Shown piece after piece: positions 10,386 through 28,728 of a stretch of 32,415 nucleotides of DNA. This stretch comes from Octopus bimaculoides. Taxonomy: Eukaryota. Under the pieces are notes generated by a model that had not been told where the DNA came from, did no database searches, and saw only the letters and a list, made by a program, of their open reading frames with translations. The DNA is taken from NCBI RefSeq assembly GCF_001194135.2, contig NC_068982.1, positions 179,622,420 through 179,654,834 of the forward strand, written 5' to 3'. Numbering within the stretch: the stretch's first letter is position 1; each line of letters starts with the position of its first letter. The position numbers were made by a program, and so were the translations under genes.

Positions 10386-10844
10386 CAAAGTTCTTCAAAT
10401 CACAAACTTCCATTTTGAAAAAGGACAAGTTAGATAATGAAATCTTAAGGGTGACCATCAGATGAGTCTTAGATGATGAGCTTCTTGGATAAGAGCTAAC
10501 TTGGAGCGAAACAACAACAGTCAGAAACTCGAGAATATAACAGCCCAGTTTTCGGTTTCAAATTGATTCCATTTCAAACAGCAAAACTTTATGGAACTAA
10601 AGAGACGAAGTAACTTCTCGTTTATTGTCTCATAATTGAGAAGTGTCTTTAGAATTGGTTGCCAACAATTTCCTCCTTTCCAACAACGGTAAATCGATGA
10701 ACATAAAGAAATATGTGTGAATATATGTGTGTTTACATACGTATGTACACGGGTGTGCACATGCAGGTGCGCCAATGTATCTGTGGATACACACATATAT
10801 ATGCACACACACNNNNNNNNNNATGTGGATACACACATATATAT

Positions 10845-11395: not shown

Positions 11396-11635
11396 CTATT
11401 TATGTATTATGTTGTGTCTGAAGGGTGGCTAATATGCGGGTTAAGTTGAAAGCAGATATTAAGAAAATCTAAAGAGATAGATAGAATGATCAAAGACAGA
11501 AAAGAGAAGAGAGAGAGTAGAAACAAGACAGAAGGAGGGGAAAAAAAAGCACCGTGGGGGTGGGTTTTTCTATAAGTCTTCGTTTTTACGAAATTAATAT
11601 ATTAATGGAAAATGGGCGGCCAAAACCGATTATGT

Positions 11636-14008: not shown

Positions 14009-14784
14009 NNNNNNNNNNNNNNNNNNNNNNNNNNNNNNNNNNNNNNNNNNNNNNNNNNNNNNNNNNNNNNNNNNNNNNNNNNNNNNNNNNNNNNNNNNNN
14101 NNNNNNNNNNNNNNNNNNNNNNNNNNNNNNNNNNNNNNNNNNNNNNNNNNNNNNNNNNNNNNNNNNNNNNNNNNNNNNNNNNNNNNNNNNNNNNNNNNNN
14201 NNNNNNNNNNNNNNNNNNNNNNNNNNNNNNNNNNNNNNNNNNNNNNNNNNNNNNNNNNNNNNNNNNNNNNNNNNNNNNNNNNNNNNNNNNNNNNNNNNNN
14301 NNNNNNNNNNNNNNNNNNNNNNNNNNNNNNNNNNNNNNNNNNNNNNNNNNNNNNNNNNNNNNNNNNNNNNNNNNNNNNNNNNNNNNNNNNNNNNNNNNNN
14401 NNNNNNNNNNNNNNNNNNNNNNNNNNNNNNNNNNNNNNNNNNNNNNNNNNNNNNNNNNNNNNNNNNNNNNNNNNNNNNNNNNNNNNNNNNNNNNNNNNNN
14501 NNNNNNNNNNNNNNNNNNNNNNNNNNNNNNNNNNNNNNNNNNNNNNNNNNNNNNNNNNNNNNNNNNNNNNNNNNNNNNNNNNNNNNNNNNNNNNNNNNNN
14601 NNNNNNNNNNNNNNNNNNNNNNNNNNNNNNNNNNNNNNNNNNNNNNNNNNNNNNNNNNNNNNNNNNNNNNNNNNNNNNNNNNNNNNNNNNNNNNNNNNNN
14701 NNNNNNNNNNNNNNNNNNNNNNNNNNNNNNNNNNNNNNNNNNNNNNNNNNNNNNNNNNNNNNNNNNNNNNNNNNNNNNNNNNNN
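14009..14784. other. assembly gap (N run) flanked by (AT)n
   Basis: Run of N; end coordinate approximate. Confidence 0.95.
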
Positions 14785-15859: not shown

Positions 15860-15908
15860 TGTGTCTAGAATAAGTATTAGNNNNNNNNNNGAAACTGAAA
15901 GAAGTCCG

Positions 15909-16755: not shown

Positions 16756-16767
16756 NNNNNNNNNNNC

Positions 16768-16920: not shown

Positions 16921-17090
16921 TGTGGTTAGTGGTTAGGGCGTTGCACTCATGTTCGTAAGAATGCGGTTTCGATTTCTGGACGGAGTGATGCGTTGTGCTC
17001 TTTTGCAAAACACTTCATTTCACGTTTCACCAGTCCACTCACCTGACAAATATGAGTAATCCTACGACGGACCCGCATCCCATCCAGGTG
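16921..17090 (+). mobile_element. SINE family C
   Basis: GTGGTTAGTGGTTAGGGCGTTGCACTCATG..GGTTTCGATTTCTGGAC..CACTTCATTTCACGTTTCACCAGTCCACTCA. Confidence 0.8.
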
Positions 17091-20208: not shown

Positions 20209-20665
20209 CAGCTCTATATTTAAGAGATGAGGAATTATGTACATTATTTACATAATTCGGCTAATATACCCTCCAGCCTTCAGGACATTTCGAACAGGTA
20301 TTTTTCGATGTTATTATTATTATAATTATTATTATTCAAATCACTGCCTGGAATCGAACTCGGAATCTAGGGGTTAGTAGCCCGCACTCTTAACCACTAT
20401 GCCATATGGGCAATTATGGAGTGAATTTTAGGGCTTATAAATCTAATATTTTCCTATCCTTCCTTAATACCGGTTCCCATATGCTACTCATATCTGCACT
20501 CAGTCTCCTTAGGAGGTTGTGCCCTAGCATATGTGCTGCTTCTTTCAGTTTAGGCTCAATATATTAGAATCATTATTTACATTATTTACATTTGATGGAT
20601 ATTTGTCCTCATCTTGTTGTTAACGCAACGTTTCGGCTGATATACCCTCCTGCCTTCCTCATGAT
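20209..20665 (-). mobile_element. 5'-truncated copy of the PLE at 26994-28715, in partial tandem arrangement
   Basis: Reverse complement of 20341-20552 (AAACTGAAAGAAGCAGCACATATGCTAGG..GGAACCGGTATTAAGGAAGGATAG..ATTAGATTTATAAG..CCATAATTGCCC..TGGCATAGTGGTTAAG..GAGTTCGATTCC) matches ~28300-28520. It continues through (AAT)n, an HHR remnant and the tail. A second HHR/tail segment lies at 20571-20665. Confidence 0.9.
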
Positions 20666-22120: not shown

Positions 22121-22256
22121 NNNNNNNNNNNNNNNNNNNNNNNNNNNNNNNNNNNNNNNNNNNNNNNNNNNNNNNNNNNNNNNNNNNNNNNNNNNNNNNN
22201 NNNNNNNNNNNNNNNNNNNNNNNNNNNNNNNNNNNNNNNNNNNNNNNNNNNNNNNN
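22121..22256. other. assembly gap
   Basis: Run of N. Confidence 0.95.
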
Positions 22257-24634: not shown

Positions 24635-25596
24635 NNNNNNNNNNNNNNNNNNNNNNNNNNNNNNNNNNNNNNNNNNNNNNNNNNNNNNNNNNNNNNNNNN
24701 NNNNNNNNNNNNNNNNNNNNNNNNNNNNNNNNNNNNNNNNNNNNNNNNNNNNNNNNNNNNNNNNNNNNNNNNNNNNNNNNNNNNNNNNNNNNNNNNNNNN
24801 NNNNNNNNNNNNNNNNNNNNNNNNNNNNNNNNNNNNNNNNNNNNNNNNNNNNNNNNNNNNNNNNNNNNNNNNNNNNNNNNNNNNNNNNNNNNNNNNNNNN
24901 NNNNNNNNNNNNNNNNNNNNNNNNNNNNNNNNNNNNNNNNNNNNNNNNNNNNNNNNNNNNNNNNNNNNNNNNNNNNNNNNNNNNNNNNNNNNNNNNNNNN
25001 NNNNNNNNNNNNNNNNNNNNNNNNNNNNNNNNNNNNNNNNNNNNNNNNNNNNNNNNNNNNNNNNNNNNNNNNNNNNNNNNNNNNNNNNNNNNNNNNNNNN
25101 NNNNNNNNNNNNNNNNNNNNNNNNNNNNNNNNNNNNNNNNNNNNNNNNNNNNNNNNNNNNNNNNNNNNNNNNNNNNNNNNNNNNNNNNNNNNNNNNNNNN
25201 NNNNNNNNNNNNNNNNNNNNNNNNNNNNNNNNNNNNNNNNNNNNNNNNNNNNNNNNNNNNNNNNNNNNNNNNNNNNNNNNNNNNNNNNNNNNNNNNNNNN
25301 NNNNNNNNNNNNNNNNNNNNNNNNNNNNNNNNNNNNNNNNNNNNNNNNNNNNNNNNNNNNNNNNNNNNNNNNNNNNNNNNNNNNNNNNNNNNNNNNNNNN
25401 NNNNNNNNNNNNNNNNNNNNNNNNNNNNNNNNNNNNNNNNNNNNNNNNNNNNNNNNNNNNNNNNNNNNNNNNNNNNNNNNNNNNNNNNNNNNNNNNNNNN
25501 NNNNNNNNNNNNNNNNNNNNNNNNNNNNNNNNNNNNNNNNNNNNNNNNNNNNNNNNNNNNNNNNNNNNNNNNNNNNNNNNNNNNNNNNNNNNNNNN
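24635..25596. other. assembly gap
   Basis: Run of N. Confidence 0.95.
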
Positions 25597-26128: not shown

Positions 26129-26993
26129 GTGCAAACAGCCTCCGAATGTCATATAGCCTCGCTCACACAGCACTTGTTAAACAACAGCAGCAAAAATAAA
26201 TACATTAACTTAATGATGAAAAGTGAAGAGAATAATAGCTGTCATGCCAGCAGCGAGCTCATCGGGAAGCATTCTCTTCCTGATGCCGTTCCACACAACC
26301 CCAAAACAGTCGGACTAACATACTTCAAAGAGAACCTGGATGTGAAACGCTCAGCACACCACCAAAAGAAAAAAAAAAAAAGAACATGCATGGGTAGGTT
26401 TCCCGAAGACTTGGAGACAGTAATATTGACATGATTCGTGACCACTACATCACATTACACTTCAAAGGGTACGCATTTGCGATCCAGAAACAAGAGATTG
26501 CTACTAAATACCTAATAAACAAAAGAGGCAGTTAACTTATTAGAGTTCCAAGATGCAATCGAAAGTGTAGATTATGTCATATTTCTGTGCGAAACATCAT
26601 ACATGTGATTAACAGCTGCCGAAAGATGTCAACCCTATGCGACATGACGTTGTCGCAAAAATAATATTCAATGTCATTCGGAAAAAAAAAGACTGCCCTG
26701 TAATATATAGAGAGAATCTCCCAGTTATTGAATACGTGCACAAAGATCAACACAAGGAATGCCAGTGGAACATTCCTGTCAAAACCTCTGTCAAGTGTAA
26801 ACGTAACAAGCCGGGTATTGATATTTGGGACGGACAACAAAAGTGTGTACCATCATAGAAGCCAGCGGTCCTGCTGACGTGAATATCTCTGAAAGTCAAA
26901 CAGAAAGAGGGTAAATATGGACAACTGTTTCGAAACCTCCAGCTTCTATACCCAGATTACAAGTTTACATTTATACGAACAATAATTGGAGTA
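26129..26993 (+). mobile_element. R4/Dong-like RLE non-LTR retrotransposon, C-terminal region (left part)
   Basis: FKGYAFAIQKQEIATKY; CCHC knuckle CRLCHISVRNIIHVINSC; RHDVVAKII; PD-(D/E)xK-type region NKPGIDIWD..IIEASGPADVNI..KEGKYGQLFRNLQLLYPDYKF. Multiple frameshifts. Confidence 0.85.
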
Positions 26994-28449
26994 CAGTTCT
27001 ATATTTAAGAGATGAGGAATTATTTACATTATTTACATTCGACGGATATTTGTCCAGCGGACAAGGGAAATGCTACAGTAGTGATGAACAAGTCTGACTA
27101 CTCTGAAAAATTGGCAAGTCTTATAAGTGATGGTAGCTAGAACAAAGAAAAGAAAGACCCAATTCAGAAAACAGAGAGGAAGTTGTCACAGATCTTGATC
27201 AAGAACAAGGATCACTTAACACCAATGAAGTACAGACAACTGATTCCACACCACAGTAGACTACCACACATGTACGGTCTCCTTAAGGTTCACAAAGATG
27301 GTATTCCATTAAGACCTATAGTGAGCTGTTGAGGTTCAGAATGTCATCCACTGAGCCGCTTCCTTGTGGATATAATCAGTCCATTAGCAGGAAAGTCAAC
27401 ATCGTACGTGAAGAATTCCACCCATTTCACAGAATTGATTCCAACCAGATGGTGAGTCTAGATGTGATAAGCCTGTTCACCAAAGTCCCAACTAGTGAAG
27501 CACTTTGGGTGATACAAGAAAAACTAGTGACAGACACCCATCTAAAAGAACTCACTAGTTTGCCAATAAGAAACTTGATGGAAATGTCGACCTTCGGTGT
27601 AGAAACTACTTACTTCAGTATGGACACTGATATATATCGACAAGAGGAGGGTTTAGCTATGGGTTCGCCATTATCACCGATAATAGCCAATATATTCATA
27701 GAATACTTTGAGAATTTGACTTTAAGATCAACACCACTAAAACCAACACTATGGTTACAATATGTTGATGACACCTTTATACTCTGGCCCTACCAGAAAG
27801 ATGTCCAAGTGCTGTTAGATCACGTGAACTCAATAAAGCCATCCATACAGTTCACAATGGAAAAGGAAAAAGACAATCAGCTGGCATTCCTGGACGTATT
27901 GATAACACGCACCAAGTATGGATTCAGGACATCCGTATACCGCAAGCCGACCTTTATTGGAAGATACCTCAACTTCATTCCCACCATCCATACAGTGTAA
28001 AGAGAGGGATTACTCAAAGTAATACAACACTTCACAAATATCTCCTTCAAGTAAAACCACCAATAGAAGAGAATATGACTAAACACTGCGTGTATTCCAT
28101 CCCATGCAGATGTGTTAAGTTATACAAAAGTGAAATATGTCGCCCCCTCAAAATAAGGGTAGAGGAACATCGCAAAGCTGTGACACGAAGAGATATTGAT
28201 AAATCGGGTATAGCTGATCATGTATGGAAAAATGGAGACCACCTCCCCCTGTGGGATGAAGTCAAAATAATTGACAGAGAACACCACTGGAAAATACGAA
28301 AACTAAAAGAAGCAACACATATGCTAGGACAAAACAACCTCCTAAGCAAACCGAGTGCATATATGAGCAGCATATGGGAACCGGTATTAAGGAAGGATAG
28401 AAAAATATTAGATTTATAAGCACTAAAATTCACTCCATAATTGCCCACG

Positions 28450-28522
28450 GGCATATGGCGTAGTGGTTAAGAGCGCGGGGCTACTAACCCCAAGATTCCA
28501 AGTTCGATTCCATGCAGTGACT
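28450..28522 (+). ncRNA. tRNA-like unit (A box/B box) in the PLE 3' region; not a functional tRNA
   Basis: A box TGGCGTAGTGG (28456-28466), anticodon-like stem-loop GGGG-CTACTAA-CCCC, AAGATTCC variable/T arm, B box AGTTCGATTCC (28501-28511). No convincing acceptor stem. Confidence 0.8.
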
Positions 28523-28617
28523 CGAACAACAATAATAATAATAATAGTAGTAATAATAATAATAATAACATCGAAAAATACCTTAGGAATGAGAACCCAG
28601 GTTCGAAATTTCCTCAA

Positions 28618-28663
28618 GACACCTAAAGAAGGCTGGAGGGTATATCAGCCGAAACTTTGTGTT
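28618..28663 (+). ncRNA. minimal hammerhead motif, mutated copy
   Basis: GACAC CTAAAGA A GGCTG GAGGGTATAT CAGCC GAAAC TTT GTGTT. Sister copies supply CCTGAA (20279-20284, minus) and GAAACGTT (20627-20634, minus). Confidence 0.7.
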
Positions 28664-28728
28664 AACAACAAACAAGATTTGGACAAATATCCGTCGAAAT
28701 TATGTAAATTATGTAAATAATTGGAGTA

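Follow-up and report, generated by a model that had tools for sequence, protein, structure and literature searches.

We analysed a 32,415-nt stretch of Octopus bimaculoides DNA (contig NC_068982.1; "the window") and found that positions 26994-28722 on its plus strand hold a 5'-truncated, decayed Penelope-like element (PLE), here called copy A, in which a tRNA-derived unit lies between the end of the last open reading frame (ORF) and a hammerhead ribozyme motif. An earlier note on this DNA had named an A box, a CTACTAA loop, a B box, an (AAT)n tract, a hammerhead motif and a tail at this locus, and all of them were found in place. Copy A is laid out as follows.

26981-26993, no strand: left direct repeat aataattggagta, a 13-mer recurring at 28716-28728
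26994-27057, minus strand: inverted 5' arm, a 64-nt reverse complement of copy A's own tail, with the longer (T2) end (...ctggacaaatatccgtcgaatgtaaataatgtaaataattcctcatctcttaaatatagaactg) included
27058-28419, plus strand: PLE coding region, 5'-truncated and frame-broken, with a reverse transcriptase (RT) fragment and a C-terminal endonuclease (EN) ORF
27329-28000, plus strand: RT fragment ORF (Pfam RVT_1, E=2e-10 on 27329-27997)
28075-28419, plus strand: C-terminal EN ORF, motif CVYSIPCRC..Y..E..R....EH, stop TAA at 28417-28419
28413-28419, plus strand: TTTATAA, overlapping the EN stop codon
28449-28524, plus strand: tRNA-derived unit (head), beginning about 30 nt 3' of the EN stop
28456-28466, plus strand: A box TGGCGTAGTGG, 11 of 11 positions matching TRGCNNAGTGG
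28481-28487, plus strand: anticodon-like loop CTACTAA, read from the sequence
28501-28511, plus strand: B box AGTTCGATTCC, 10 of 11 positions matching GGTTCGANNCC
28525-28569, plus strand: (AAC/AAT/AGT)n microsatellite within the element, its length varying strongly among copies
28600-28609, plus strand: second, B-box-like motif GGTTCGAAAT upstream of the hammerhead, kept in all three families described below
28617-28663, plus strand: PLE-type minimal type-I hammerhead, predicted to be inactivated in copy A, with helices I and II and the core assigned by comparison with relatives
28664-28722, plus strand: 3' tail with the short (T1) end ...TGTAAATAATT
28716-28728, no strand: right direct repeat aataattggagta, read from the sequence

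Both the coding part and the ends of copy A are those of a PLE. The RT fragment matches RVT_1, as do many of the 1519 RT homologues that we found. The EN ORF shows, by eye, a GIY-YIG-type motif with cysteines, and one of its homologues (P0009) is labelled a GIY-YIG endonuclease by JGI; Pfam and PDB gave no match to it. The 13-bp direct repeat is the target-site duplication (TSD) of copy A; as 7 nt at its start are shared with the AATAATT that terminates the element, the TSD measures 6-13 bp. The inverted tail arm is supported by 88% identity between 28680-28722 and 27056-27018 (BLAST), and arms of like kind are also present in four of the related loci introduced below (L002, L004, L006 and L132). 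Together with a partial tandem at 20740-20209 and head-to-head pairs in the same four loci, the arm at 26994-27057 reproduces the pseudo-long terminal repeat (pseudo-LTR) organisation of PLEs; hammerheads, pseudo-LTRs, inverted arms and tails are all already known from this class (PMC4209133, PMC8557442, PMC11167929). We identify the region as the 3' pseudo-LTR of a PLE that is dead and 5'-truncated and that, apart from the tRNA-derived unit, is a standard element.

The unit itself has the sequence features of a type 2 RNA polymerase III (Pol III) promoter. In copy A the two boxes match their consensus sequences and start 45 nt apart, within the 30-60 nt spacing of such promoters, and the TATAA precedes position +1 of the tRNA-like unit by 34-30 nt. 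A strict A/B-box pattern search of the whole window matched only this head and that of a second copy, copy B, which lies on the opposite strand next to a further fragment.

20552-20209, minus strand: copy B, consisting of the last ~39 EN codons, spacer, tRNA-like unit, (AAT)n, tail and the long (T2) end ...aaatatagagctg
20740-20572, minus strand: partial upstream unit in direct orientation, consisting of (ATT)n, the 3' half of a hammerhead and a tail with the T1 end

The EN codons of copy B match EN residues 76-114 (tblastn) and end with a stop at 20437-20435, followed by an A box at 20404-20394 and a B box at 20360-20350. ORF C-terminus, 30-nt spacer and head are alike in the two copies, which are 84% identical over 284 nt (BLAST). 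This bears out the earlier report of an opposite-strand insertion at 20209-20552 in which a like ORF C-terminus is fused to a like tRNA unit at an identical junction. The upstream unit ends 17-22 nt before copy B, so that the pair forms a partial tandem. An internal deletion in the copy B tail took out most of its hammerhead.

To follow the unit beyond the window we used homologues of the EN ORF (62) and of the RT fragment, and fetched DNA around 12 of these. The tRNA-bearing relatives fall into three families. Family 1, the octopus type (EN 81-83% identical, one at 69%), comprises L002 from Octopus vulgaris chromosome OX597819.1, the 621-nt contig L003 from another sample, and the Logan contig L128; family 2 (EN ~63%) comprises L001, L004, L129 and L132, all from assembly ERZ21867824; and family 3 (EN ~65-69%) comprises two copies in L006 and the Logan contig L005. 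The junction of stop, ~30-nt spacer and head is identical in copies A and B, L002, L003 and L128, and in families 2 and 3, too, EN stop and hammerhead are separated by a head that contains both boxes. Because the heads of all three families share CCAAAAATT before the tRNA-derived part and GCAGTGAC / ACAGGYGAG after the T arm, and can be aligned along their length, we read them as one ancient module and not as independent captures.

Thirteen of the 14 heads that we found lie directly 3' of a PLE ORF or ORF fragment, and no TSD of its own, the sign of an ordinary short interspersed element (SINE), flanks the tRNA-derived unit. Given this linkage and the recurrence of the ORF/head junction in independent copies, the unit is an inherited component of the pseudo-LTR, and the earlier proposal that it travels with the PLE holds. 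The alternative of a one-off SINE insertion into this particular copy, for which the resemblance to a SINE head speaks, is refuted and can be set aside with near certainty, since both window copies share their junction with copies from O. vulgaris, from other samples and from divergent families.

Families 2 and 3 come from another host. That of ERZ21867824 is not Octopus: 77 kb of its DNA hold no copy of the tRNA-SINE that is common in the window. The composite pseudo-LTR is fixed in a PLE lineage with one family in octopus and two in another host, in the order AT-rich TTTATAA, tRNA-derived unit, variable spacer or microsatellite, B-box-like GGTTCGAA, minimal hammerhead and two-ended tail. Other related PLEs lack the unit, namely L127 (a JGI contig), a minus-strand copy in L132, L130 (Leptinotarsa) and L131 (Macrosteles), the last two being insect relatives in which the hammerhead is present and the A/B unit is absent. 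The L132 copy (17412-16740, minus strand) represents another PLE lineage in the ERZ21867824 host, with an EN 72% identical to that of L004 and a decayed hammerhead. The pseudo-LTR of L130 has a TATAAATA box in the place of the tRNA unit.

A tRNA-derived unit, or A and B boxes, upstream of a PLE ribozyme is not mentioned in the searchable PLE literature, and in a recent repeat annotation of O. vulgaris (PMC13282606) no PLE is said to contain Pol III boxes or a unit derived from a tRNA. The combination of tRNA unit and hammerhead in a PLE pseudo-LTR is therefore an arrangement that we did not find described in the searchable literature, and it may already sit unremarked in a Repbase, Dfam or SINEBase consensus.

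What the heads have kept, and what they have lost, bears on how the unit might act. ARAGORN called no tRNA in the head copies, and the Rfam tRNA model scored 13.7 bits on the copy A unit against a threshold of 29 and gave no match on L006, the best-preserved relative. Heads folded no better than their shuffles (z = +0.78 and -0.41). The unit has no acceptor stem, and only 2-3 of the 5 T-stem pairs remain in most copies. Because tRNA models fail and the heads fold no better than shuffles, we conclude that the unit is tRNA-derived but not tRNA-like in structure. At the same time, an alignment of 10 copies from the three families has invariant or nearly invariant columns at ATGGC..A..G (A box) and GTTC.A (B box), at the upstream TTTATAA and at AAAA.T. 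The TTTATAA is non-coding in family 2 and has an AT-rich variant in family 3, with TATAA ~29-34 nt before the unit. The untranslated region (UTR) sequence adjoining the unit cannot be aligned between families, and no stem covariation is visible in the head alignments. With the two boxes and the upstream AT-rich motif kept while the stems decay, the pattern looks like that left by a promoter working at the DNA level and not by an RNA mimic. The 3' half of the family-1 heads and the loop CTACGAC of L128 resemble what we take to be the vertebrate tRNA-Arg(ACG) gene, a likeness that serves as a lead only.

These observations make it very improbable that the unit works as a tRNA mimic, folding in the PLE RNA and being recognised by RNase P/Z, tRNA ligase, an export factor or the PLE RT. 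Such a role would suit its 3' UTR position near the RT start site, and the tRNA ligase RtcB circularises hammerhead-cut retrozyme RNA (PMC7229834), but the missing acceptor stem, the poor T stem, the failed tRNA models and fold tests and the lack of visible covariation all go against it.

In family 2 we observed insertions between the A and B boxes, of ~200 nt in L132 (11680-11878) and ~30 nt in L004 (10513-10540), that are absent in L001. All three families also have a B-box-like GGTTCGAA(A/G)T 15-60 nt upstream of the hammerhead (window 28600-28609; L004 ~10640-10665; L006 ~11503-11525), which is present twice in families 2 and 3; these motifs may serve as additional binding sites for TFIIIC or belong to the sequence context of the ribozyme. 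Their retention downstream, and the confinement of conservation to the A and B boxes, would be expected if the unit bound TFIIIC but gave rise to no productive Pol III transcript, serving instead to mark a chromatin boundary or to assist a Pol II promoter close by in the pseudo-LTR. We consider this improbable, as it leaves unexplained the avoidance of Pol III terminators throughout the ORF that is described further below.

The hammerhead downstream of the unit is clearest in the relatives. Copies with an intact core read ...ACAC CUGAWGA A GGCYGG-loop-UCRGCC GAAA CG U U|GUG..., and relatives read CUGAWGA...GAAACGUU. Canonical CUGANGA and GAAA boxes are present in L001, L004, both copies in L002 and both in L006; copy A has CUAAAGA in place of the first, and copy B has lost them by deletion. 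In copy A the parts of the motif, all on the plus strand, are the following.

28617-28622, plus strand: 5' strand of helix I
28623-28629, plus strand: core CTAAAGA (family consensus CTGAWGA)
28630, plus strand: bulged A
28631-28636 / 28645-28650, plus strand: helix II
28651-28654, plus strand: GAAA
28655-28656, plus strand: CT, where the family has CG
after 28658, plus strand: would-be cleavage site
28659-28663, plus strand: 3' strand of helix I

The family hammerhead has a bulged A between positions 9 and 10.1, a G10.1-C11.1 pair, GAAA, a palindromic CG and GUU|G. Over 10 copies, helix II (GGCYGG/UCRGCC) is 92% paired and shows a compensatory exchange of C-G and U-A pairs between families, and helix I is weak. 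The palindromic positions 15.2-16.2, which would form helix III in a dimer, read A-CG-U within AACGTT in 6 of 10 copies and are kept in 90% of alignment cells; a palindromic CG in a 1-bp helix III implies action as a dimer. By these features the ribozyme belongs to the known minimal type of PLEs, and self-cleavage is predicted. The minimal hammerhead claimed in the earlier note is thus present as a motif in the window and is of PLE type in the family, but neither window copy would be active: copy A is predicted to be a dead ribozyme because of the changes G5 to A (core CUAAAGA, not CUGANGA) and G16.2 to U (helix III ACUUU, not ACGUU), and copy B has lost most of its hammerhead.

No Rfam hammerhead family matched at the gathering score or at E<=10, even on an L002 copy with a canonical core; PLE minimal ribozymes likewise escaped standard descriptors before (PMC4209133). 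The insect relatives have PLE minimal hammerheads at ~5501-5545 of L130, from a beetle (CCTGAAGA-T-GATTG...CAATC-GAAACGTCGTG), and at ~5696-5740 of L131, from a leafhopper (CCTGAAGA-C-GGGATC...GATCCC-GAAACGTTGTG). A metagenome scan with the hammerhead pattern CCTGAWGAAGGYYGGAGG was discarded as a source of further relatives, as nearly all of its 120 matches were due to chance and only L011 had a complete ribozyme, without a tRNA unit.

The tail that follows the ribozyme contains a block AAGAT(G/T)...GGACAAATATCCG kept in all three families, and ends at one of two alternative points ~27 nt apart, again in all three: T1 (...TAAATAATT) or, further on, T2 (...TCATCTCTTAAATATAGARC). Examples are 28722 (T1), 20209 (T2) and the arm at 26994-27057 in the window, and others occur in L001, L002, L004, L006 and L129. 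Two such ends match expectation, since two adjacent internal start sites have been shown for the RT of a lizard PLE (PMC11167929).

Pol III terminates at runs of four or more T residues (T4). We counted 2 runs of at least four T in 10.8 kb of ORF from the tRNA-bearing families, against 32 in 5.2 kb of homologous ORF from the two insect relatives, whose T content is similar. Within 2,500 in-frame codons of the tRNA-bearing ORFs there was 1 T4 run, compared with 7.6±2.3 expected, and none of 1000 synonymous-codon shuffles came out as low. Other homopolymers occurred as often as the same shuffles predict (A4, 70 vs 77.9; C4, 20 vs 20.0; G4, 7 vs 7.9), and the insect ORFs showed no T4 avoidance (25 observed, 16.2 expected). 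The codons for Phe are used at a TTC:TTT ratio of 56:12 in the tRNA-bearing families and 26:45 in the insects. As to the repeats, five pseudo-LTRs with the unit have no T4 run and a sixth has 1, inside its 200-nt insertion; those without the unit have 5, 9, 3 and 0, the L132 minus-strand copy having 5 in 344 nt. The tRNA-bearing PLEs avoid T4 through both ORF and repeat, which is a new observation, and the informative tests of it are the synonymous-codon shuffle and the comparison with insects.

There is, in our estimate, about an even chance that the tRNA-derived unit functions at the DNA level, as a type 2 (internal) promoter for Pol III. Where elements stand in partial tandems, transcription by Pol III would begin ~5-10 nt ahead of the unit and run on past the hammerhead and tail into the unit that follows, halting only in flanking DNA, because the elements avoid T4 terminators. 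The dimeric hammerhead would then cut off the promoter-bearing leader, leaving a promoter at the 3' end of the unit-length RNA, and the PLE reverse transcriptase would begin copying at the tail, at either of its two ends. The earlier suggestion that a PLE had captured a Pol III promoter thereby gains indirect support from the kept A and B boxes and TTTATAA and from T4 avoidance; promoter activity itself is predicted and unproven.

Several points weigh against this reading. ARAGORN and Rfam fail to recognise a tRNA in the unit, some copies (L004a, L132) tolerate 30-200 nt between the boxes, and solo copies starting at the head were absent from the loci searched (see below). The pooled T4 counts include copies of one family that share ancestry, and with one copy per family the depletion is modest (1 vs 4.8±1.9 runs, P~0.02); a second-order Markov expectation makes it look weak. 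T4 scarcity in the ~300-nt module was rejected as a Pol III signature, not being significant against dinucleotide shuffles (P 0.3-0.9), and the fetched loci held no recognisable host transposable element ORFs of useful length as controls. Moreover, an uncapped Pol III RNA with a 5'-OH would be a poor mRNA, so that translation would still call for a Pol II transcript made separately. Finally, the sole PLE promoter studied, that of D. virilis Penelope, resembles a TATA-less promoter of long interspersed elements (LINEs; PMC2377424), whereas the octopus PLE would carry a Pol III promoter.

A stronger form of the Pol III promoter reading, suggested by the avoidance of T4 through the ORF, is that the whole autonomous element is a Pol III unit, in which a terminator-free transcript, driven from the tRNA-derived promoter in an upstream pseudo-LTR, extends across the hammerhead, the tail, the RT-EN ORF of ~2.5 kb and the pseudo-LTR that follows, and the hammerheads release a unit-length template. 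We regard this as possible but unlikely. If it were true, the element would be, to our knowledge, the first autonomous retrotransposon with, and dependent on, a Pol III promoter of its own, and SINEs with a tRNA head and a ribozyme, such as the Schistosoma Sm-alpha repeats, could have evolved directly from PLE pseudo-LTRs.

The unit could also be a neutral passenger, a tRNA-SINE or tRNA pseudogene that once inserted in the 3' UTR of an ancestral PLE and has been copied along without function, in which case it would be merely an annotation detail of cephalopod PLE consensus sequences. The lost tRNA fold would agree with this, as would the tolerated damage (L002a lacks the T arm, and L132 has 200 nt between its boxes), the lack of solo copies in the ~116 kb searched and the success of the related PLEs without the unit (L127, L130, L131 and the L132 minus-strand copy). 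On the other side, the damaged copies are dead and so uninformative about master elements, the unit has stayed in one place through the divergence of three families whose EN sequences are 63-69% identical, conservation falls exactly on the A and B boxes and the upstream AT-rich motif next to UTR that cannot be aligned, and the presence of the unit is accompanied by T4 avoidance over ORF and pseudo-LTR. On balance we think it rather doubtful that the unit is inert.

We also asked whether the module gives rise to short elements. Profile searches for head and tail covered the window and all eukaryotic loci, ~116 kb in total. None of the 14 heads was a clean solo unit starting at the head, in a set of loci that were mostly fetched via the ORF and so are biased to ORF-linked copies. 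When heads were counted by whether they start a copy or extend a PLE, the 13 noted above were ORF-linked and one was a tail-less fragment. This fragment, at L002 6061-6118, was considered as a SINE-like solo head and rejected, as it lacks a tail and forms one arm of a head-to-head pair in an expanded microsatellite. Tail-only copies are ordinary 5' truncations; a search with the translated module returned no candidates for solo copies at the protein level; and all hammerhead units in the ~116 kb were PLE-linked, with none of the short tandem kind seen in Sm-alpha or retrozymes. The earlier idea that the PLE spawns tRNA-headed SINEs or retrozymes therefore found no support in this small, partly ORF-biased sample. 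Because loci fetched through the ORF favour ORF-linked copies, we limit the statement to there being no sign of an abundant derivative SINE in the sampled loci.

A related possibility is that the unit mainly serves to make short Pol III RNAs of head, hammerhead and tail that are copied by the PLE enzyme. The module from head to tail has all the cis signals that this would call for (promoter, ribozyme and RT start tail) and is free of T4 runs, Sm-alpha and animal retrozymes provide precedents, and 893 unclassified SINE families are listed for O. vulgaris (PMC13282606). Nevertheless we judge it unlikely in view of the absence of clean solo units, small and biased as the sample is, and of the fact that the abundant SINE of the window has a different head and no PLE tail. 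That SINE is found at the following places.

17595-17250, minus strand: unrelated tRNA-SINE, tandem dimer
16921-17058, plus strand: unrelated tRNA-SINE
32360-32235, minus strand: unrelated tRNA-SINE
423-278, minus strand: unrelated tRNA-SINE
L002 81-184: unrelated tRNA-SINE

It has the head ...GTGTGGCTTAGTGGCTAGGGTGTTGGACTCACGATCG...GGTTTCGATTC... and the body ...GTATTCTTGAGCACAACACTTCA..., is present in at least five copies in the 32-kb window and may be one of the named octopus SINEs, which include OK, OR1 and OR2. The idea that the PLE head is simply this common SINE was rejected, as the two show generic tRNA similarity only (nhmmer E=3.6e-4 over 70 nt).

Comparison with known systems shows which parts of the arrangement are shared and which are not. 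The minimal hammerhead ribozymes described for PLEs (Cervera & de la Pena 2014, PMC4209133) are like that of the octopus element in being type-I motifs in the repeat after the RT-EN ORF, in the lengths of helix II (long) and helix I (short), in a 1-bp helix III whose palindromic CG points to action as a dimer, in a G10.1-C11.1 pair, and in copies arranged both inverted and in tandem; the insect relatives differ from the tRNA-bearing PLEs in having this ribozyme without a tRNA unit. A likeness to the composite is found in the SINE-like Schistosoma repeats Sm-alpha and Sj-alpha, which also join a tRNA-like Pol III promoter and a hammerhead in one unit, and in which cleavage of Sm-alpha multimers yields monomers with the promoter at their 3' end, which makes tandem copies necessary (PMC6765202, PMC2770079). 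Sm-alpha, however, is short, non-autonomous and very abundant, its hammerhead being of the canonical loop-loop kind and its head resembling tRNA-Gln, whereas the octopus unit is the end-repeat of an autonomous RT-EN element, has a minimal PLE ribozyme and an Arg-like-looking head, and yielded no short derivatives in our searches.

Animal non-LTR retrozymes resemble the octopus PLE in that their hammerhead sequences are related to PLE pseudo-LTRs and they are thought to be mobilised by PLEs, but they are short tandem repeats expressed as circular RNA, for which a tRNA head or Pol III promoter is not reported (PMC7229834; bioRxiv 10.64898/2026.07.22.740005). The tRNA-derived SINEs (SINE2) with LINE partners share with it an A/B-box head, a body and a 3' tail held in common with an autonomous retroelement; in octopus, by contrast, head and tail lie inside the autonomous partner itself, 3' of its ORF, and the partner is a PLE and not a LINE. 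The model proposed here also recalls R2, where a ribozyme trims the element RNA from a transcript not made by Pol II (PMC6765202). R2 is co-transcribed by Pol I, has a ribozyme like that of hepatitis delta virus and borrows the host rDNA promoter, having none of its own; in the octopus PLE, the Pol III promoter would belong to the element itself.

Among eukaryotic retroelements, PLEs are the class that is understood least, and how their template RNA is produced and why they require tandems and ribozymes are open questions. A Pol III-type promoter before the hammerhead, together with terminator avoidance, provides a testable model of Pol III transcription, ribozyme trimming and copying from the tail. 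It also links an autonomous PLE with non-autonomous repeats that bear a tRNA head and a hammerhead, Sm-alpha and the retrozymes among them, the two having so far been described apart.

A few other features of the window are worth recording. Just upstream of copy A, at 26440-26990, short ORFs (for example 26637-26858) resemble a fragment of another retroelement, and copy A seems to have inserted into or beside it. There are six assembly gaps with 1905 N in total (10813-10822, 14009-14784, 15881-15890, 16756-16766, 22121-22256 and 24635-25596), mostly in microsatellite arrays, and these may hide some repeat copies. An ORF at 1120-1479 on the plus strand has helix-turn-helix (HTH) domains of the Mos1/mariner transposase type (Pfam HTH_48 and HTH_32, weak) and represents the remnant of a mariner-like transposon.

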